64,000 nt of DNA from Eutreptiella sp. 'Long Island Sound 2002' (taxonomy: Eukaryota > Protista > Euglenida): contig OZ038379.1 of NCBI GenBank assembly GCA_964036045.1, forward strand, positions 8,990,001 through 9,054,000, given 5' to 3'. How positions within the stretch are numbered: the stretch's first letter is position 1; each line of letters opens with the position of its first letter. A program made the translations under genes and the position numbers. Below the pieces are notes generated by a model. The model was not told the origin of the DNA and searched no databases. It worked only from the letters and a program-made list of their open reading frames with translations. Below, piece after piece: positions 4,058 through 27,923 of this stretch.

Positions 4058-4082
4058 CGAAAAAGGATAGACACTCAGAAAG
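4058..4082 (-). other. Genomic copy of the euglenid spliced-leader exon (retroposed trans-spliced 5' end)
   Basis: Minus strand reads CTTTCTGAGTGTCTATCCTTTTTCG against Euglena SL (A)CTTTCTGAGTGTCTATTTTTTTTCG: 23/25 identical, same length. It is followed directly by ATG (4057), not by the GT donor of an SL RNA gene. Confidence 0.85.
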
Positions 4083-15900: not shown

Positions 15901-16350
15901 TCATGGTGTATCCCCGAGGCCCAGCCCCCGCAGGTACCTCCGCCGTTTTGCCTTTGCCATTCCGTACCACTTCCAGAACGGCACAGACACAACGTCGTAC
16001 CCAAAGCACTGCAGCTGCCGTCGCTTCAACAACGTCGCCCCCGAAGCCGCAAAGCCCCCGGGGCCCTGCACAAAATGTGATGGGCCGTCCACCTCCACAA
16101 CAACGCGCCGCTTCTGCAGCAGAATGTCCGCACTGTACCCCCCAGCGTCAGACAAAACGACCTCTTCAACAAACTTCACGTTCAGTTGCCGGAGCACCGC
16201 GGCCACAGACCTCTGCAGCCGCGAAGGAGCCGCACGTTGTGAGGCCTCTGTAAAATGCGTGGAACACTGCTCAACGAAGGGGCCCATGCCCAGAAGCGCT
16301 TTGTTGCTGAGCGGAAGCTCCTGCTTGTGCAATGCCACGTGCAGAAGGAC
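15901..16350 (-). CDS. Same gene, exon 2: RAP domain (149 aa; spliced protein 912 aa)
   Basis: Acceptor TTTCTCTTCAG|GTC gives a phase-0 join LCQLHQ|VLLHV across a 545-nt GT-AG intron. RAP motifs YSADI...VVVEVDGPSHF...ATLLKRRQL..FGYDVVSVPFWKW are present. Confidence 0.88.
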   Translation of the reverse strand, partial: VLLHVALHKQELPLSNKALLGMGPFVEQCSTHFTEASQRAAPSRLQRSVAAVLRQLNVKFVEEVVLSDAGGYSADILLQKRRVVVEVDGPSHFVQGPGGFAASGATLLKRRQLQCFGYDVVSVPFWKWYGMAKAKRRRYLRGLGLGDTP

Positions 16351-16895
16351 CTGAAGAGAAACGTGAGCGAATGAGGGCCAAAATTTCAGTGGAGATGAGT
16401 AGTTTGGAGAGGCTGTGTGTGGCATTACCTTCCTGCGAATTGTGTCGATCTAACGGCAAAGCAATGATCAAAAAGATCGGAATTTCACACGCTACTTTCT
16501 GACATCAGACGTTCTGTTCACAAACTTGACTACCCCTGTTCCCCACCTGAACCCGCTTCCCAAACCAACGACTTTAGATGACACTCTGCCAAAGCCACTT
16601 CACTGCGCGTAGTTCCACGTCATGAAGGGCACGTCGAGCCTCAAAGGCTGCCCAAACTCCAACTTCTCTACGGCTCCCAAAGATGACGACACTCTGCTTT
16701 GTTTTGGGTTTCTTGTGGCAAAGCACTTGGCCACAAATAGTAAGCAGCTGGGTGCTTTGACCATTGACCATTGGTCACGTTTGCAGCAACCGCTGCAAAA
16801 TATCAAGGTTACCGACACCGCGGCAGCCCGCCCCCCGCCCCGAGTGAGCTATCAAAGCATTCAACAGGAACGCACCCAAACTCATCACAAGATAC

Positions 16896-19184
16896 CTGAT
16901 GCAATTGACACAGTGCAGGCGAACACATGGGTATCTCAGTATCCGCAAACGCACGGTCCAGAAGGCGGGTGATGACGCTGTCGTGCAAACTGTCAAATAC
17001 AGCAAAACTCCACAACGGGTTGCCAATTTCCTGTGCCTTGAACGTGGCCAACACGTCGTCGTGCAATAGCCGGCGTGCAACTGCAGCCATCAGGTCCGCA
17101 TCATGTACATCCAATGTGGCGAAGGCCCACACAGTGTTGGCAATGTTCTGTGCGTTGAACGTGGCCAACACGTCGTCGTGCAATAGCCGGCGTGCAACTA
17201 CAGCCATCAGGTCCGCATTATGTACACCCAATGTGCCGAAGGCCCACACAGTGTTGGCAATGCCCTGTGCGTTGAACGTGGCCAACACGTCGTCGTGCAG
17301 TAGCCGGCGTGCGACTGCAGCCATCAGGTCCGCATCATGTACACACAACGCGGCGAAGGCCCACACGGTGTTGGCAATGTCCTGTGCGCTGAACGTGGCC
17401 AACACGTCGTCGTGCAATAGCCGGCGTGCGACTGCAGCCATCAGGTCCGCATTATGTATACCCAATGTGGCGAAGGCCCACACAGTGTTGGCAATCTCTT
17501 GTGCCTTGAACCTGGCCAACACGTCATCGTGTGATAACCGTTGTGCGACTGCAGCCATCAGGTCCCCATTATGTACACCCAATGTGGCGAAGGCCCACAC
17601 AGTGTTGCCAATGTCCTGTGCCTTAAACGTGGCCAACACGTTGTCGTGCAATAGCCGGCGTGCAACTGCAGCCATCAGGTCCGCATTATGTACACCCAAT
17701 GTGGCGAAGGCCCACACAGTGTTGCCAATGTCCTGTGCCTTGAACCTGGCCAACCCGTCGTCGTGCAGTAGCCGGCGTGCGACTGCAGCCATCAGGTCCG
17801 CATTATGTACACCCAATTTCGCGAAGGCCCACACAGTGTTGGCAATCTCCTGTGCCTTGAACGTGGCCAACAGGTTGTCGTGTGATAGCCGGCGTGCAAC
17901 TGCAGCCATCAGGTCCGCATTATGTACACCCAATGTGGCGAAGGCCCACACAGTGTTGGCAATCTCCTGTGCCTTGAACGTGGCCAACAGGTTGTCGTGT
18001 GATAGCCGGCGTGCAACTGCAGCCATCAGGTCCGCATTATGTACACCCAATGTGGCGAAGGCCCACACAGTGTTGGCAATGTTCTGTGCGTTGAACGTGG
18101 CCAACACGTCGTCGTGCAATAGCCGGCGTGCAACTGCAGCCATCAGGTCCGCATTATGTACACCCAATGTGGCGAAGGCCCACACAGTGTTGGCAATGTT
18201 CTGTTCACTGAACGTGGCCAACACGTCGTCGTGCAGTAGCCGGCGTCCGACTGCAGCCATCAGGTTCCCATTATGTACACCCAATTTCGCGAATGCCCAC
18301 ACAATGTTGGCCACACTTTGGGCCGAGAGCTGTTCAATCATACGGTCATCTGTCACACGTGTTGCAAGCGCCTCCATCAGCTCCGGGTGGGGCATGTCTA
18401 CCTTGGCCAAGGCCCAGCAGGTCATGGAGATGGCTTGGCCGTTGAGGTTCTGCATAATGTCCCGCCGAAGCAGCCGTTGTGCGATCCCATGCACCAGCAC
18501 CTCATCGCGCACTCGCATCTTACTGAATGCGTGCAGTAGTAGCGCTGCCTGACGCCCTTCGAGAGCCCCCAGCACTTCCGGATCAGAGACACGACGCCTC
18601 AACGCAGGCACCGTATCATTTGTGGGTTCCATAATGAGCCTCCGGAAGTCACTCCTACCCGCGCAAACATCTGCCACTTCCCGAACTATTGCCAGCAGTT
18701 CAGAGGGCGTGTATCCCGCGGCCCCCCTTTCCACCTCCGCACACATCGCCATAAACTCCTCATGCCCCACGGCATCACCGGACTGCACCTTCCGCTGCGG
18801 CCGTCCTGGCGATCGTTCTGCTGTTGTTGGTGTGTGGCCGCGGCCCCGATCCCGCCCCCGTCCTCCATGTTTCTTTCGGCTGCTGAACATGCGGCGTACC
18901 ACAATTCTGCTCTTGGGCCCCCGGACACGAAACATGGCACGTGACACGGAAGCGATGCCGGTGGTTCCTGCGGTGCGCACTACACCGGCACATGTGTACC
19001 AGCGTCCAGGCACGCCTCCCCTCTGCCAATCGTTGACCAGTCGACGCTCCGTGAAGGACGCAGTCCCCTTGGCAGCATGACTGAGGGCTGTGATGCCCCT
19101 TGTGCTGAGAGCGGCCCATGGGGACGTCGGCCACGCCTTCGAAAAGGGCTGCGCCCTCTGTAACCAACGCAGCATCGCATGCAT
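16896..19184 (-). CDS. Helical-repeat (OPR/HPR/FAST-like, 39-aa units) RAP-domain protein, exon 1 (763 codons); probable organellar RNA-binding protein
   Basis: R/S/A-rich transit-peptide-like N-terminus. Repeat consensus FxAQxIANTVWAFATLGVHNADLMAAVARRLLHDDVLAT with 117-bp period. Donor CAG|GTATCT at 16896/16895. Confidence 0.88.
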
Positions 19185-19206: not shown

Positions 19207-19300
19207 TCCACCACCACCACCACCACCACCACCACCAGTCGCAGCAGCCAGCAGCACCGCACCAGCAGTAGCACAGCAGTAGCATAGCAGCAGCAGTAGC
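19207..19300. repeat. (CCA)n/(CAG)n trinucleotide low-complexity tract
   Basis: CCACCACCACC... followed by degenerate CAGCAG repeats. Confidence 0.8.
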
Positions 19301-21390
19301 AGGGTTCACCTCAGGCCGGTCACGAGATGCCATCAAACTTAGGCAAAAACACACACTCAAATTGACTGAAGTGTAAAGCATTTCACACCATAACACCCCC
19401 GAAACGAGAATCAAACAACTGGATGACTTGTAGCAAAGGAACCCACAGTCCCGTTCTGCGATGTTTAGGGGCTTGGAGAAGGTTCGCACCCACACCAATC
19501 CCAACATCACTTGGTGGTGTTAAAGTCCCCTTAAGGTGCCTCGTGCTTTGCTTGTGTCAGCGCGTTGATCCGGTTGGTAACGTAACAAGTTGCATCTTGA
19601 CATACCAAACAAACCAAACATGTTCACCATAGCTCGATTTTGAGATGATTCTACAGTCGAATGACCCCCCCCACACACACACAAAAATGCAAAACACACT
19701 CTCCACTATGAACTTTTCACTCCTGCCAGGTTGACCCCAATTGCCCCAATAGTTGTACCACGCACATGCCACGTGCTTCCCCATCAGTCTGGTACCTTTC
19801 AACAGGTTTTCTGTTGAAGATTTCATCGGACACAACCCTTTAAAATGGACTTACCACGCTTGATTTCCTTAACTTCAAACCATTGAATGGACCGGAGAGC
19901 GTGTTTGACCAATCCCTCCGAAAGGGCTGATGGGCAATAAATTTGGAGGCCCCGTTTTTGTTTCATCTGACGCAGGGTTGGGCTACAATGAGGAATTTGA
20001 CCACATTGATCCAGGAGCTGCTCAATGCACACAACAGCTCAACTGAAGCCTAGTTCCAGAGGCCACCTACATTCAAATGGGCCTTCTGAATTTTTTCGGA
20101 TGCGTGTCTTTGCGTGGTACAACAATGTGAACAATACCGGTCATCAATTGACTCCGGCAACATAATCCTTCGCGCCCATTCAAGAATACCTTTCATGCAG
20201 TGCATAGAACAGGCGCGGCACTGCCTGGTGACTTGTGTGGCTCTTGGCTGGAACTGTGAGAACCAGATCAGGCCTCTTTGGACCTGTTGAAAGCCTTGCA
20301 CCTGAGTGAAACGCATTCTAGGGTCTGAATCCCTCTCTATCAATAAGCACCCATTCCCCATAGTAAGCACTACCACTGAGGTGCCCCTAGTGCCCTCCTT
20401 CCCCCCTTCATGTAGAGGCGCAAATGCAAAGTGTGCCTTCCCTCATTCTGGCTCTTTTGGGTGACCTGATCCAACCCACCCCCTTTCCCAAGATTTACCC
20501 CAAAGTTGCCTCAAGTGCCAGCCGTGGGGCAAAAGACATTGTTGTTCTGGATTCATGCAGGAATTTGTAGTTGTGAGAGGGGCCATCCCCATCCCTGCCT
20601 GTTGGGTCTGCATCCAAATGGCAGACACTTTTAATCTTGTCTGCACCATGGCGTGACCTCAAAAATTGAGTTCCTCAACTCAACTGTCTAATTTTTACCA
20701 CAATGACTCGAATGGCCCGTGGAATGCATGACGAAGGTCCGTACACATGGTATGTGATGCAAAAGCTGTACAGATGCACAGTGGCCCATGATCAAAAGAA
20801 TGTTGGCCAAACACATGGCAAAAAATCACCCCATCACAATGATGGGTACCAAGGGTGCACTCTCTAGCACTTGCAGCACAATGGGAAAAGGGAGTCTTGA
20901 GAAGACTGTTTACAGGTCCCATCTACCCAATGATGTGCCGCAACCCAGTGAAAAACACCGAGGACTGAGTTTGCCTCCGCTCCCCCGCACAACCCTTGAG
21001 CACTAGTGAATGGGTTCCTTGACATACCACAGTTCCACCAGCCACAACACATACACTATTGCATATGCAGGCCTATGAAGTTCCCCGCCAATCTGCCACT
21101 AAGGTTCCCCGCACCGTTCCCCAAGAAAAATGGGAAACCAGGAAAATTGGGGGGACAGTGGGGGAAATCGGGGGAAATGGGGAGAAACGGGGGGAAATGG
21201 TGGAAATTGGGAGTAATGGGGGGGGACACAAGGGAAATTGGGGGGCAATGGGGGAACAATGGAGGAACAATAGGGGAAGATTCCTTTGCCCGTTTGTTCC
21301 CCATTTTCCTCCGTTTCCAATACCCCCAATGTGGAAGAAGCGTCAAAACCTGCGCTAGGGGCAACAATGACGCCCCTAGTATCACAAGCC

Positions 21391-24300
21391 CCGGAACCAA
21401 CCATGGCCGCCATCCGGAACCAACCATGGCCGCCCCCCGGAACCAGCCATGGCCGCCCCCCGGAACCAGCCATGGCCGCCCCCACAGAACAAGCCATGGC
21501 CGCCCCCTCGAACAAGCCATGGACGCCCCCCACAACAAGCCATGGCCACCCCCCGGAACCAGCCATGGCCGCCCCCCGGAACCAACCACGGCCGCCCTCC
21601 GGAACCAGCCATGGCTGCCCCCCGGAACCAGCCACGGCCGCCCTCCGGAACCAGCCACGGCCGCCCCCCGGAACCAGCCACGGCCATCCCCGCGGAACCA
21701 ACCATGGCCGCCCTCACGAACCAGCCATGGCCCACCCCCGGAACCAGCCATGGCCGCCCCCACGGAACCAACCATGGCCGCCCTCCCTCGGAACTAGCCA
21801 TGGCTGCCCCCCAGAACAAGCCATGGCCGCCCCCCGGAACCAACCATGGCCGCCCCCCAGAACAAGCCATGGCCGCCCCCCGGAACAAGCCATGGCCGCC
21901 CCCCGCAACCAGCCATGGCCGCCCCCCCGAACCAGCCATGGCCGCCCTCCGGAACCAACCATGGCCGCCCTCCGGAACCATGGCCGCCCTCCGGAACGAA
22001 CCATGGCCGCCCCCCGAAACCAGCCATGGCCGCCCCCCAAAAAAAGCCATGGCCGCCCCCCAAAGCAAGCCATGGCCACCCGCGGTAACCAACCATGGCT
22101 GCCCCCCGGAACAAGCCATGGCCGCGCCCCAGAACAAGCCATGGCCGCCCCCCAGAAAAAACCATGGCCGCCCCCCGGAACGAGCCATGGCCGCCGTCCA
22201 GAACCAACCATGGCCGCCGTCCGGAACAAGCCATGGCCGCCCCCCGGAACGAGCCATGGCCGCCGTCCGGAACGAACCATGGCCGCCCTCAAGAACCAGC
22301 TATGGCCGCCCCCTGTAACCAACCATGGCCGCCCTCCCTCGGAACCAGCCATGGCCGCCCCCCGTAACAAGCCATGGCCGCCCCCCAGAACAAGCCATGG
22401 CCACCCCCCCGAACCAGCCATCGCCAGCCCCCAGAACCAGCCATGGCCGCCCCCCACAACAAGCCATGGCCGCCCTCCGGAACCAGCCATGGCTGCCCCC
22501 CGGAACCGACCATGGCCGCCCCCCGGAACCAACCATGGCCGCCCCCCAGAACCAGCCATGGCCGCCCCCCGGAACAAGCCATGGCCGCCCCCCACAACAA
22601 GCCATGGCGGCCCTCCGGAACCAGCCATGGCTGCCCCCCAGAACCAAACATGGCCGCCCCCCGTAACCAACCATGGCCGCCATCCGGAACAAGCCACGGC
22701 CGCCCTCCGGAACCAGCCATGGCCGCCCCCCGGAACCAACCATGGCCGCCCCCCGGAACGAGCCATGGCCACCCCCCGTAACAAGCCATGGCCGCCCCCC
22801 ACAACAAGCCATGGCCGCCCCCAAGAACAAGCCATGGCCGCCCTCCGGAACCAGCCATGGCTGCCCTGCGGAACCAACCATGGCCGCCCCCCGGAACCAA
22901 CCATGGCCGCCCCCCAGAACCAGCCATGGCCGCCCCCCACAACAAGCCATGGCCGCCCCCCACAACAAGCCATGGCGGCCCTCCGGAACCAGCCATGGCT
23001 GCCCCCCGGAACCAACCATGGCCGCCCCCCGGAACCAACCATGGCCGCCCCCCGGAACCAGCCACGGCCGCCCTCCGGAACCAGCCATGGCCGCCCCCCG
23101 GAACCAACCATGGCCGCCCCCCGGAACGAGCCATGGCCGCCGTCCGGAACGAACCATGGCCGCCCTCCAGAACCAGCTATGGCCGCCCCCCGTAACCAAC
23201 CATGGCCGCCCCCCGGAACCAGCCATGGCCGCCCCCCAGAACAAGCCGCGGCCGCCCCCCAGATGAAGCCATGGCCGCCCCCCGGAACCAACCATGCCCG
23301 CCCTCCGGAACCAGCCATGGCCGCCCCCCGGAACCAACCATAGCCGCCCCCCGGAACGAGCCATGACCGCCCCCCGGAACCAGCCATGGCCGCGCCCCAG
23401 AACAAGCCATGGCCGCCCCCCAGAACCAACCATGGCCGCCCCCCAGAACGAGCCATGGCCGCCGTCCGGAACCAACCATGGCCGCCGTCCGGAACAAGCC
23501 ATGGCCGCCCCCCGGAACGAGCCATGGCCGCCGTCCGGAACGAACCATGGCCGCCCTCCAGAACCAAACATGGCCGCCCCCCGTAACCAACCATGGCCGC
23601 CCCCCGGAACCAGCCATGGCCGCCCCCCGTAACAAGCCATGGCCGTCCCCCAGAACAAGCCATGGCCACCCCCCGGAACCAGCCATCGCCACCCCCCAGA
23701 ACCAGCCATGGCCGCCCCCCAAAACAAGCCATGGCCGCCCCCCAGAACAAGCCATGGCCGCCCTCCGGAACCAGCCATGGCTGCCCCCCGGAACCAACCA
23801 TGGCCGCCCCCCGGAACCAACCATGGCCGCCCCCCGGAACCAGCCATGGCCGCCCCCCGGAACAAGCCATGGCCGCCCCCCACAACAAGCCTTGGCGGCC
23901 CTCCGGAACCAACCATGGCCGCCCCCCACAACAAGCCATGGCTGCCCCCCGGAACCAACCATGGCCGCCCCCCGGAACCAACCATGGCTGCCCCCCGGAA
24001 CCAGCCATCGCCACCCCCCAGAACCAGCCATGGCCGCCCCCCACAACAAGCCATGGCCGCCCCCCAGAACAAGCCATGGCCGCCCTCCGGAACCAGCCAT
24101 GGCTGCCCCCCGGAACCAACCATGGCCGCCCCCCGGAACCAACCATGGCCGCCCCCCAGAACCAGCCATGGCCGCCCCCCGGAACAAGCCATGGCCGCCC
24201 CCCACAACAAGCCTTGGCGGCCCTCCGGAACCAACCATGGCCGCCCCCCACAACAAGCCATGGCTGCCCCCCGGAACCAACCATGGCCGCCCCCCGGAAC

Positions 24301-27300
24301 CAACCATGGCCGCCCCCCGGAACCAGCCATGGCCGCCCCCCGTAACAAGCCATGGCCGCCCCCCGTAACAAGCCATGGCCGCCCCCCAGATGAAGCCATG
24401 GCCGCCCCCCGGAACCAGCCATGGCCGCCCCCCAGAACCAGCCATGGCCGCCCCCCACAACAGGCCATGGCCGCCCCCAAGAACAAGCCATGGCCGCCCT
24501 CCGGAACCAGCCATGGCTGCCCTGCGGAACCAACCATGGCCGCCCCCCGGAACCAACCATGGCCGCCCCTCGGAACCAGCCATGGCCGCCCCCCACAACA
24601 AGCCATGGCCGCCCCCCACAACAAGCCATGGCGGCCCTCCGGAACCAGCCATGGCTGCCCCCCGGAACCAACCATGGCCGCCCCCCGGAACCAACCATGG
24701 CCGCCCCCCGGAACCAGCCACGGCCGCCCCCCGGAACCAGCCATGGCCGCCCCCCGGAACCAACCATGGCCGCCCCCGGGAACGAGCCAGGGCCGCCGTC
24801 CGGAACGAACCATGGCCGCCCTCCAGAAGCAGCTGTGGCCGCCCCCCGTAACCAACCATGGCCGCCCCCCGGAACGAGCCATGGCCGCCCCCCAGAACAA
24901 GCCACGGCCGCCCCCCAGATGAAGCCATGGCCGCCCCCCGGAACCAACCATGCCCGCCCTCCGGAACCAGCCATGGCCGCCCCCCAGAACCAACCATAGC
25001 CGCCCCCCGGAACGAGCCATGGCCGCCCCCCGGAACCAGCCATGGCCGCCCTGCGGAACCAACCATGGCCGCCCCCCGGAACCAGCCATCGCCACCCCCC
25101 GGAACCAGCAATGGCCGCCCCCCGGAACAAGCCATGGCCGCCCCCCAGAACCAACCATGGCCGCCCCCCAAAGCCAACCATGGCCGCCCTCCGGCACCAA
25201 CCATGGCCGCCCCCCGGAACCAGCCATGGCCGCCCCCCAGAACAAGCCATGGCCGCCCCGCACATGAAGCCATGACCGCCCCCCGGAACCAGCCATGGCC
25301 GCCCTCCGGAACCAACCATGGCCGCGCTCCCCCGGAACCAACCATGGCCGCCCCCCGGAACCAGCCATGGCCGCCCCCCGGAACCAGCCATGGCCGCCCT
25401 CCGGAACCAACCATGGCCGCCCTCCCCCGGAACCAGCCATGGCCGCCCCCCGGAACCAGCCATGGCCGCCCCCCGGAACGAGCCATGGCCGCCCCCCGGA
25501 ACCAGCCATGGCCGCCCTCCGGAACCAACCATGGCCGCCCTCCCCCGGAACCAACCATGGCCGCCCCCCGGAACCAGCCATGGCCGCCCCCCGGAACCAG
25601 CCATGGCCGCCCTCCGGAACCAACCATGGCCGCCCTCCCCCGGAACCAGCCATGGCCGCCCCCCGGAACCAGCCATGGCCGCCCCCCGGAACGAGCCATG
25701 GCCGCCCCCCGGAACCAGCCATGGCCGCCGTCCGGAACGAACCATGGCCGCCCTCCAGAACCAGCTATGGCCGCCCCCCGTAACCAGCCATGGCCGCCCT
25801 CCAGAACCAGCCATGGCCGCCCCCCGGAACCAGCCATGGCCGCCCCCCAGATGAAGCCATGGCCGCCACCCGGAACCATCCATGGCCGCCCCCCGGAACC
25901 AACCATAGCCGCCCCCCGGAACGAGCCATGGCCGCCCCCCGGAACCAACCATGGCCGTCCTGCGGAACCAACCATGGCCGCCCCCCGGAACCAACCATGG
26001 CCGCCCCCCGGAACCAGCCATCGCCACCCCCCGGAACCAGCAATGGCCGCCCCCCGGAACAAGCCATGGCCGCCCCCCAGATGAAGCCATGGCCGCCCCC
26101 CAAAGCCAACCATGGCCACCCTCCGGAACCAACCATGGCCGCCCCCCGTAACCAACCATGGCCGCCCCCCGGAACCAGCCATGGCCGCCGTCCGGAACGA
26201 ACCATGGCCGCCCTCCAGAACCAGCCATGGCCGCCCCCCGTAACCAGCCATGGCCGCCCTCCGGAACCAACCATGGCCGCCCCCCGGAACAAGCCATGGC
26301 CGCCGTCCGGAACGAACCATGGCCGCCCTCCAGAACCAGCTATGGCCGCCCCCCGTAACCAGCCATGGCCGCCCTCCGGAACCAGCCATGGCCGCCCTCC
26401 GGAACCAGCCATGGCCGCCCCCCAGATGAAGCCATGGCCGCCCCCCGGAACCAGCCATGGCCGCCCCCCGGAACCAACCATAGCCGCCCCCCGGAACGAG
26501 CCATGGCCGCCCCCCGGAACCAACCATGGCCGCCCTGCGGAACCAACCATGGCCGCCCCCCGGAACCAACCATGGCCCCCCCCCGGAACCAGCCATCGCC
26601 ACCCCCCGGAACCAGCAATGGCCGCCCTCCAGAACAAGCCATGGCCGCCCCCCAGATGAAGCCATGGCCGCCCCCCAAAGCCAACCATGGCCACCCTCCG
26701 GAACCAACCATGGCCGCCCCCCGTAACCAACCATGGCCGCCCCCCGGAACCAGCCATGGCCGCCGTCCGGAACGAACCATGGCCGCCCTCCAGAACCAGC
26801 TATGGCCGCCCCCCGGAACAAGCCATGGCCGCCCTCCGGAACCAGCCATGGCCGCCCTCCGGAACCAGCCATGGCCGCCCCCCAGATGAAGCCATGGCCG
26901 CCCCCCGGAACCAGCCATGGCCGCCCCCCGGAACCAACCATAGCCGCCCCCCGGAACGAGCCATGGCCGCCCCCCGGAACCAACCATGGCCGCCCTGCGG
27001 AACCAACCATGGCCGCCCCCCGGAACCAACCATGGCCGCCCCCCGGAACCAGCCATCGCCACCCCCCGGAACCAGCAATGGTCGGACCCCGGAACAAGCC
27101 ATGGCCGCCCCCCAGATGAAGCCATGGCCGCCCCCCGGAACCAGCCATGGCCGCCCCCCGGAACCAACCATAGCCGCCCCCCGGAACGAGCCATGGCCGC
27201 CCCCCGGAACCAACCATGGCCGCCCTGCGGAACCAACCATGGCCGCCCCCCGGAACCAACCATGGCCGCCCCCCGGAACCAGCCATCGCCACCCCCCGGA

Positions 27301-27923
27301 ACCAGCAATGGTCGGACCCCAGAACAAGCCATGGCCGCCCCCCAGATGAAGCCATGGCCGCCCCCCAAAGCCAACCATGGCCACCCTCCGGAACCAACCA
27401 TGGCCGCCCCCCGGAACCAGCCATGGCCGCCCCCCAGAACAAGCCATGGCCGCCCCCCGAAACAAGCCATGGCCCCCCCCCGGATGAAGCCATGGCCGCC
27501 CCCCGGAACCAGCCATGGCCGCCCTCCGGAACCAACCATGGCCGCCCTCCCTCGGAACCAGCCATGGCCGCCCCCCAGAACCAGCCATGGCCGCCCCCCC
27601 AGAACAAGCCATGGCCGCCCTCCGGAACCAGCCATGGCCGCCCTCCGGAACCAACCATGGCCGCCCTCCGGAACCAACCATGGCCGCCCTCCCTCGGAAC
27701 CAGCCATGGCCGCCCCCCAGAACCAGCCATGGCCGCCCCCCCAGAACAAGCCATGGCCGCCCTCCGGAACCAGCCATGGCCGCCCCCCCGGAGCCAGCCA
27801 TGGCCGCCCTCCGGAACCAGCCATGGCCGCCCTCCGGAACCAACCATGGCCGCCCTCCGGAACCAGCCATGGCCGCCCCCCGGAACCAACCATGGCCGCC
27901 CCCACGGAACCAGCAATGGCCGC
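21391..27923. repeat. GC-rich satellite, 23-bp unit GGAACCAGCCATGGCCGCCCCCC, about 6.5 kb (roughly 280 units), with 230-bp higher-order repeats
   Basis: Unit read directly. The variant CAGATGAAG recurs at 26423, 26653, 26883, 27113 and 27343. Confidence 0.97.

Follow-up and report, generated by a model that had tools for sequence, protein, structure and literature searches.

A two-exon gene of a euglenid-type alga encoding a probable organelle RNA-binding protein with ten near-identical OPR-type repeats and a RAP domain

Organellar RNA in algae and malaria parasites, and RNA in human mitochondria, is under the control of helical-repeat proteins of the OPR, HPR and FASTK classes, but the rule by which they recognize RNA continues to be called uncharacterised (PMC12691811, PMC8635915). 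[quoted passage not shown] In the apicomplexan HPR/RAP proteins and human FASTK proteins (FASTKD1-5), helical repeats of about 37 aa overlap FAST_1 and precede a RAP domain whose fold is Vsr-like. They bind and process RNA in mitochondria and take part in assembling the ribosome there; among RAP proteins, cleavage of RNA has been demonstrated for human FASTKD5 alone, in vitro (bioRxiv 10.1101/2024.07.18.603998). Other members are subunits of large complexes. Kinetoplastid RESC6, of the RNA-editing substrate-binding complex, and Chlamydomonas mL115-mL117 hold RNA by concave surfaces or inner grooves (PMC12687428, PMC8660880), and mL115, mL116 and mL117 grip the 3' ends of single-stranded rRNA in this way. 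In this, the only published OPR-RNA structure, the inner-groove contacts are, according to its authors, mainly electrostatic and made with the backbone (PMC8660880). The same fold can also serve as a scaffold, as in RESC6 and Polytomella ASA2/3 (PMC12687428). The sole attempt at an OPR code found in the literature is an unpublished PhD thesis which, as cited in PMC13126933, names one primary determinant together with the three positions that precede it in the repeat.

The gene described here lies in Eutreptiella sp. 'Long Island Sound 2002' (contig OZ038379.1), within a stretch of 64,000 nucleotides (the window), and is the only gene of this repeat-RAP type in the window. It is a genuine nuclear gene with two exons, from an alga of euglenid type, and its product, which belongs to a known family, probably binds RNA in an organelle. 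An earlier note on this DNA had proposed a helical-repeat and RAP protein of the OPR/HPR class, and the motif, Pfam and fold matches presented below bear this out. The parts of the gene are as follows:

16896-19184, minus strand: exon 1, 763 codons, with a presequence-like N-terminal region and the entire helical-repeat solenoid
18768-19184, minus strand: N-terminal 139 residues, basic, rich in S, T, A and G and with few acidic residues; candidate mitochondrial presequence and linker
16351-16895, minus strand: predicted intron of 545 nt with GT-AG borders, phase 0; stops interrupt every continuation of the exon-1 reading frame
15901-16350, minus strand: exon 2, 149 codons and a stop, with a helical linker and the RAP domain
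15928-16098, minus strand: RAP domain core, endonuclease-like alpha/beta fold (Pfam PF08373)

The open frame containing exon 1 extends over 16809-19184, with a donor (CAG|GTATCT) after 16896, and the acceptor of the predicted intron is ttctcttcag|GTCC. Exon 2 aligns from its residue 2 to residues 932–1067 of the Euglena gracilis transcript protein P0022 (42% identity to the C-terminus of that protein), and the P0022 residues immediately preceding this part resemble the end of exon 1. The intron, which had been claimed earlier, is thus placed by its splice signals and by homology, and is supported by homology rather than by reads. An initial model, in which the acceptor made exon 2 begin at 16449, was abandoned because the homologue consensus and P0022 put the junction at 16896|16350, where the acceptor is also much better. 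The 541-aa ORF that runs over 16927-18552 on the other strand arises from the repeat as a by-product and is no gene.

All sequencing runs were compared as Logan contigs. Those of runs X5 and X8 also span the intron and therefore behave as DNA, and in X1, an estuary metatranscriptome, only short pieces were found, on parts of the exons and with 1–7 mismatches. No splice joint was seen in the Logan contigs of any run. The evidence for transcription consists of these short, mismatched metatranscriptome contigs and is patchy. Among the first 100 residues of the predicted protein there are 17 R+K against 2 D+E, and hydropathy indicated no hydrophobic segment in the N-terminal region; since a signal-peptide-like segment of this kind is missing, the mitochondrion is the more likely predicted organelle. 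The N-terminus can still be called transit-peptide-like, as it had been, on the grounds of its composition and nothing beyond this.

The solenoid is built from the following units:

18339-18689, minus strand: degenerate N-terminal helical units (aa 166–282), two to three in number and listed as three in the 39-aa register
18222-18338, minus strand: unit R0, with 22–31 of 117 nt different from the core units and S/S at columns 5/8
17052-18221, minus strand: core array R1-R10, ten units of 117 bp (39 aa), from TRF and the unit tables
16935-17051, minus strand: divergent last unit R11, which caps the array, with K/E at columns 5/8

At 17019-18311, TRF picked out a tandem repeat of period 117 bp, present in 11.1 copies at 92% matches and with zero indels, and this agrees with the register tables on the ten near-identical units and degenerate flanking units that had first drawn attention to the locus. 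The core consensus is LATFxAQxIANTVWAFATLGVHNADLMAAVARRLLHDDV. From R1 to R10, the residue pairs at columns 5/8 are S/N, N/N, K/E, K/E, K/D, K/D, K/E, S/D, N/G and N/N. Pairwise, the ten units differ at 3–17 of 117 nt (85–97% identity), each has its own combination of substitutions, and each scores 82–87 bits against an HMM of the units; weak HMM matches to the degenerate upstream units occur at 18345-18533.

Columns 5, 8 and 10 of the 39-aa unit are positions 2, 5 and 7 of the motif F-x-A-Q-x-I-x-N, where the earlier note saw variation concentrated. Its list of residue triplets was reproduced exactly, and columns 5 and 8 do stand out, holding 12 of the 37 non-consensus residues and being the sole columns with three or four residue types. 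Against this, 16 of the 39 columns vary across R1-R10 and column 10 is unexceptional: it is A or G and varies in two of ten units, no more than columns 3, 23, 35, 38 and 39 (the last three vary in three of ten units each). Column 10 is A or S family-wide, an ordinary small-residue structural position, and was given up as a third 'code' position. As the units are few and not independent, the following contrast is indicative only: pN is 0.38 at codons 5 and 8 together versus a pS of 0.10 over the array (about 3.7-fold), while pN/pS is 0.39 on 32 structural codons and 0.75 for the array overall. Comparison of the units shows the structural codons to be under purifying selection, and it shows the ten units to be recently duplicated or homogenised, in line with the recent amplification previously suggested. 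Two positions per repeat, columns 5 and 8, appear selected to differ. R2 and R3 are separated by three nucleotide differences, all non-synonymous and all within codons 5 and 8, which suggests that a unit was duplicated and then mutated at just these codons. At columns 5 and 8, every residue state is a single-nucleotide neighbour of the others.

Homologues of the protein number 763 at E<=0.001, the best being Euglena transcripts, and many of them combine RAP with the RESC6-type repeat family; an identical protein was not present in the protein database. In Pfam, exon 1 matched DUF1601 (87 bits) and FAST_1 (58.6 bits), both above the Pfam cutoffs, and mTERF (31 bits). The FAST_1 match is confined to the repeat units, and FAST_2 was absent from the matches at E<=0.1. 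A search with an HMM built from the units recovered 959 ungapped units in 120 homologues, from many lineages, with Q7, N11, W14, A15 and A17 near-invariant. Flanked by such residues (Q7, N11, W14), columns 5 and 8 keep to restricted polar alphabets, 76% N/K/S/T and 77% E/D/N/A, respectively, unlike the freely varying surface columns (entropy 3.5–4.0 bits over the 959 units). The pair K/E is 2.7 times commoner at these columns than expected. For columns 5 and 8, mutual information exceeds its shuffled value but is no higher than in many other column pairs, and was therefore not used as evidence. Successive units in the 120 relatives are spaced by 37 (320 pairs), 39 (191 pairs) or 38 (136 pairs) residues, mixed within the family, and because this range, like the OPR definition (PMC8635915), takes in 39 residues, the unit is not the distinct new variant it had been thought to be. 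Nor are near-identical arrays a peculiarity of this gene, since relatives in diatoms and other algae have them too. Across 32 further algal arrays that are partly homogenised, column 8 was the column most often non-consensus (0.48), and ranked first in 13 of them. A literature search returned no paper linking OPR or RAP repeats with Euglena and none describing near-identical OPR arrays.

Exon 1, modelled by AF2 without the N-terminal 139 residues, gave a pLDDT of 92.6 and a pTM of 0.86. In each unit, helix A takes up columns 6–18 and helix B columns 24–36, with a short turn, and the degenerate N-terminal units are also helical (pLDDT >95). The repeat region is accordingly modelled as antiparallel helix pairs stacked into an alpha-solenoid like those of solved family members. 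Foldseek and phmmer matched exon 1 to RESC6 (8fn4_6, TM 0.77, E=3.5e-25) and Chlamydomonas mL115 (7pkt_O, E=2e-13), and further fold matches were with mitoribosomal HPR chains of Toxoplasma gondii, PPR10 and Polytomella mitoribosomal proteins. On the downstream ORF, PF08373 scored 43 bits (cutoff 24.2, E=4.4e-11), which substantiates the C-terminal RAP domain. Its conserved residues are all kept: E, D, E-V-D-G-P-x-H (E-x-D-G-P-x-H in the family) and L-L-K-R-R (K-R-R). The exon-2 model (pLDDT 88, pTM 0.81) matched T. gondii mitoribosomal RAP proteins (rmsd 2.2 Å) and also Vsr, FASTKD4 (9gek) and I-Bth0305I, a PD-(D/E)XK homing nuclease domain, so that the endonuclease-like fold attributed to it is well founded. 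A sequence search of the PDB with exon 2 gave no match, and the fold search alone found relatives.

Set beside the known systems, the predicted protein shares with Chlamydomonas NCL both the OPR-RAP architecture and the repeat motif F-x-(P/A)-Q-x-(L/I)-x-N-x-x-W-A-x-A, which occurs in 12 of 12 units. NCL repeats, however, are degenerate within a protein, whereas ten units here are almost the same at the DNA level; the lineage is euglenid, and the likely organelle is the mitochondrion rather than the chloroplast whose mRNA is the NCL target. The Pfam domains (DUF1601, FAST_1, RAP) and the Foldseek matches to T. gondii mitoribosomal chains and FASTKD4 are shared with the apicomplexan HPR/RAP and FASTK proteins, but those have few and highly degenerate repeats, the period here is 39 and not 37, and FAST_2 went undetected. 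RESC6 and mL115-mL117, which of all solved structures match best in both sequence and fold, differ in being degenerate-repeat, stable subunits of large complexes with largely electrostatic RNA contacts. By analogy, the modular repeats on a near-identical scaffold may be likened to TALE effectors, and columns 5 and 8, where the first helix begins, are spaced like the variable PPR positions 2 and 5. The likeness to TALEs would be one of design, as there is no homology, the presumed ligand is RNA and not DNA, and the variation reaches well beyond a di-residue.

Taking these points together, we consider it fairly probable that the gene encodes an organellar RNA binder in which columns 8 and 5 give base preference, the RAP domain cuts or holds an RNA end, and the array has grown by unit duplication. 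The solenoid would bind a single-stranded stretch of organellar RNA in its inner groove, where columns 5 and 8 may be located, judging from their position on the helix and the analogy with PPR. In each unit, the residue at column 8, in the first turn of helix A, would contribute a base preference, helped by the N-cap residue at column 5. The thesis placement of OPR determinants, as far as it is cited, also agrees with columns 8 and 5. The RAP domain would either cut near the bound site or hold an RNA end. Duplication of single units, followed by changes at codons 5 and 8, is the most likely way in which the array grew, and specificity would therefore be evolving quickly. A wider proposal is put forward with considerable doubt: that sets of homogenised OPR-RAP proteins may be maintained in euglenids and, independently of these, in diatoms and other algae, and that in such proteins column 8, with column 5, spells the target at one base per unit, new specificities arising by unit duplication and codon mutation.

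A protein of the same family could also have no base code at all, columns 5 and 8 being the least constrained exposed positions of a recently duplicated array that binds RNA mainly by charge and shape, or that acts as a protein or RNP scaffold like RESC6 and ASA2/3. The mainly electrostatic OPR-rRNA contacts in the Chlamydomonas mitoribosome and the scaffold proteins among the closest folds favour this reading, and the spread of variation over so many columns, the overall pN/pS, the mutational closeness of the states at columns 5 and 8 and their unremarkable mutual information all sit comfortably with it. It is nonetheless rather unlikely, since relaxed constraint does not readily account for an excess of pN over pS at two codons while the others are under purifying selection, for R2 and R3 differing at those two codons only, for polar alphabets so much narrower than those of the surface columns, or for the leading place of column 8 in other arrays.

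A decaying or untranscribed duplicate, or a ten-unit array that assembly has made out of a shorter repeat, is very unlikely. The missing splice joint, the patchy RNA contigs and the lack of an identical database protein would fit such a locus, and near-identical 117-bp units are hard to assemble; but both exons are open over 2.7 kb, the structural codons and conserved RAP residues have been maintained, every unit carries its own substitutions, and DNA contigs from several runs cross the locus, those of X9 matching its flanks without differences. Least likely of all is a protein that serves not in organellar gene expression but in defence or surveillance against RNA of foreign or selfish origin. 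The general pattern of a fast-evolving, homogenised recognition array joined to a nuclease-like domain is the one point in its favour, and a comparable arms-race pattern is seen in the restorer-of-fertility-like PPR genes of plants. PADLOC, however, found zero matches with its 5027 defence-system models, leaving the foreign-RNA target suggested in the earlier note without support, the closest solved relatives are all organellar, and the N-terminus is presequence-like.

The gene is a useful natural test case for the unsolved RNA-recognition rule of its family, though its product belongs to no novel class of protein. With a scaffold that hardly varies and differences that fall mainly at two positions, it is free of most of the noise by which the decoding of degenerate repeats is hampered, and several arrays of this type in one genome, matched to two small organellar genomes, could yield a code as was done for PPR and TALE proteins. 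Should the variation prove neutral, this would simply be another gene for an organellar RNA binder whose repeats expanded recently. If homogenised, coded arrays are indeed maintained by these algae, the OPR/HPR/FASTK code would become readable by computation from the arrays and small organellar genomes, and the arrays could serve directly as a scaffold on which to design RNA binders or cutters.

The minus-strand gene at 15901–19184 is a further member of the already known OPR/HPR-RAP family. The ORF listing of the window gives a 791-aa open frame at 16809–19184 and a second of 174 aa at 15901–16425, both on the minus strand, and the downstream frame carries a RAP domain (Pfam PF08373, 43 bits against a cutoff of 24.2). 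Past the last repeat, the consensus of 64 homologues reads L-x-Q-L-x-Q-x-x-L...L-P, and in an E. gracilis transcript protein (P0022) the stretch PLCQLQAAILHV is unbroken. A first-guess acceptor site was rejected on this consensus and the P0022 alignment. Exon 1 ends in ALCQLHQ and exon 2 starts with VLLHV, residues 932–1067 of P0022 aligning with exon 2 from its residue 2 (42% identity). The junction has splice signals (CAG/GTATCT and ttctcttcag/GTCC, phase 0) and the predicted intron, 545 nt at 16351–16895, contains in-frame stops; together with the P0022 alignment and homologue consensus, these give the two-exon model listed here with the repeat units, the latter in the 39-residue protein register.

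Features of the gene
16896–19184, minus strand: exon 1, 763 codons (homology and splice signals)
15901–16350, minus strand: exon 2, 149 codons and stop (homology and splice signals)
Upstream of R0, minus strand: two to three degenerate units
18222–18338, minus strand: unit R0, less similar to the core
17052–18221, minus strand: ten core units as assembled, R1–R10
16935–17051, minus strand: unit R11, last and divergent

Read evidence came from the assembled contigs of public runs. Two runs from one organism (X5 and X8) have contigs over the intron as well as the exons, as DNA runs would, and a low-depth run (X9) matches the flanks with zero differences. An estuary metatranscriptome (X1) gave short pieces at 16076–16232, on the array and at 18270–19156, with 1–7 mismatches each, and no contigs at 16321–16940, which includes the intron; no splice joint was seen in the contigs of these runs. 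The X1 pieces lend weak support to transcription in a close relative and are no proof of the intron. One X5 DNA contig departs from the locus at 19181, a sign of a possible structural variant there. Directly upstream of the ATG, at 19208–19302, are CCA x10 and GCA-type microsatellites, in what is presumed to be the 5′ UTR or promoter. Elsewhere in the window, a 6.5-kb satellite at 21389–27923 (23-bp unit CCCCGGAACCAGCCATGGCCGCC, about 283 copies, 86% matches) accounts for a strongly skewed block of 71–73% GC in the composition profile. A 20-mer at 4058–4077 (minus strand) resembles the Euglena spliced leader, with two mismatches, and no such match is expected by chance; as a lead, it would fit a euglenid genome.

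The earlier note was correct in calling a helical-repeat and RAP family, as Pfam, homologues and fold all show. Exon 1 matches DUF1601 (87 bits), which is an apicomplexan HPR-type repeat, FAST_1 (58.6 bits) and mTERF (31 bits). A word-based protein search found 763 relatives, the closest being Euglena transcriptome proteins and the remainder belonging to green algae, diatoms, dinoflagellates, cryptophytes, pelagophytes and Plasmodiophora; in many, RAP is combined with repeat families that Pfam now names RESC6 and RESC8. Successive units in the relatives are spaced by 37 (320 pairs), 39 (191) or 38 residues (136), and OPRs are defined as having 38–40 (PMC8635915), HPRs now being treated as a subset of them (PMC13126933). 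The 39-residue unit, put forward earlier as a distinct variant, is thus ordinary for the family, despite a review in which 39-aa repeats are 'apparently missing' (PMC12691811).

Tandem Repeats Finder places an array with a period of 117 bp at 17019–18311 (11.1 copies, 92% matches, zero indels), with the protein consensus LATFxAQxIANTVWAFATLGVHNADLMAAVARRLLHDDV. Core units differ pairwise at 3–17 of 117 nt, and an HMM built from the units found no further copies in the window. A 541-aa open frame antisense to the array, 16927–18552 (plus strand), was rejected as a gene, being a periodic, low-complexity by-product of the repeat. The residue triplets listed in the earlier note were reproduced exactly, and of the three code positions at which it placed the variation, two (columns 5 and 8) stand out by their variability and column 10 does not. 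Among R1–R10, 16 of 39 columns vary, with three or four residue types only at column 5 (K5/N3/S2) and column 8 (N3/E3/D3/G1), which contribute 12 of the 37 non-consensus residues. Column 10 (A8/G2) is no more variable than columns 3, 23, 35, 38 or 39, and throughout the family it holds a small structural residue (A or S). The whole unit has a pooled pN/pS of 0.75 and its 32 most conserved codons one of 0.39, while at codons 5 and 8 pN reaches 0.38, with the synonymous divergence of the array at 0.10. R2 and R3 differ at three nt, all non-synonymous and all in these two codons; three substitutions placed at random on 117 nt would all land there with a chance of about 1e-4. The other 111 nt are the same in both units, down to the distinctive variants that they share at columns 35, 38 and 39. 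The simplest account of these sequences is a family member with a recently expanded or homogenised array, in which structural residues are under purifying selection and column 8, less clearly column 5, is kept different.

Near-identical 39-residue arrays also occur in several relatives, with 0.6–0.9 identity at offset 39; these are P0007, a number of metagenome proteins and two proteins from Cyclotella. The consensus differs from one array to the next, indicating that homogenisation happened repeatedly, across distant algae. In the RAP proteins of Cyclotella meneghiniana (a diatom) and metagenomes (P0011, P0041, P0035, P0057 and P0100), columns 5 and 8 once more rank with the most variable. 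P0007 derives from a related OPR-RAP gene on a 699-kb ENA contig (ERZ25074135; L001, 3001–5609), with a RAP exon very similar to exon 2; its array is a duplicated three-unit block (column 5/8 pairs K/E, A/A, K/E, then repeated), and its repeat and RAP ORFs lie in different frames, so that it has an intron or a frameshift.

Structures were predicted, and searches run, for each exon separately. The exon 1 model (residues 140–763, 65-sequence alignment; pLDDT 92.6, pTM 0.86) has in each unit a helix A (columns 6–18), a helix B (columns 24–36) and a short turn. Its nearest solved structures include trypanosome RESC6 (8fn4_6, TM 0.77 by target, phmmer E=3.5e-25), RESC4 and RESC8, the Chlamydomonas mitoribosomal OPR protein mL115 (7pkt_O), Toxoplasma mitoribosomal HPR chains, and Polytomella mitoribosomal and ASA2/3 proteins, PPR10 being more distant. 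The exon 2 model (pLDDT 88) matches Toxoplasma mitoribosomal RAP proteins (rmsd 2.2 Å), the PD-(D/E)XK nuclease domain of I-Bth0305I, Vsr and human FASTKD4, and keeps the conserved RAP residues (E, D, E-V-D-G-P-x-H, L-L-K-R-R). A catalytic role is possible, since human FASTKD5 cuts RNA in vitro (bioRxiv 10.1101/2024.07.18.603998).

Columns 5 and 8 lie at the N-cap and in the first turn of helix A, with a spacing like that between PPR positions 2 and 5; a thesis proposal, as cited in PMC13126933, has one primary OPR determinant together with the three positions upstream of it. Taken with the selection pattern, this leaves columns 8 and 5 as good candidates for residues that specify the base. 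The chief competing reading is that the protein is a scaffold or a charge-driven binder, in which case the two columns would be no more than its least constrained exposed positions. In mL115, mL116 and mL117, the single-stranded 3′ ends of rRNA pieces are held in inner grooves by contacts that are mainly electrostatic according to the authors (PMC8660880). Across 32 partly non-independent near-identical arrays (217 units), column 8 departs most often from its array's own consensus (0.48; first in 13 of 32) and column 5 comes fifth (0.35), below the loop and surface columns 22, 25 and 36. Among 959 units of other proteins, both columns are set among near-invariant Q7, N11 and W14, with N/K/S/T at column 5 in 76% and E/D/N/A at column 8 in 77%; their entropies are 3.0 and 2.8 bits, against 3.5–4.0 for freely varying surface columns, and the K/E pair is 2.7 times commoner than expected.

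The N-terminus is basic and hydroxyl-rich, without a hydrophobic segment (composition, hydropathy). As euglenid plastid import needs a signal-peptide-like segment, this would point to mitochondria rather than plastids. Action on foreign RNA, raised previously, is without support (zero matches to PADLOC defence-system models). What sets the gene apart is a near-identical array in which variation at one or two positions looks selected, and this makes the question of OPR recognition more testable.
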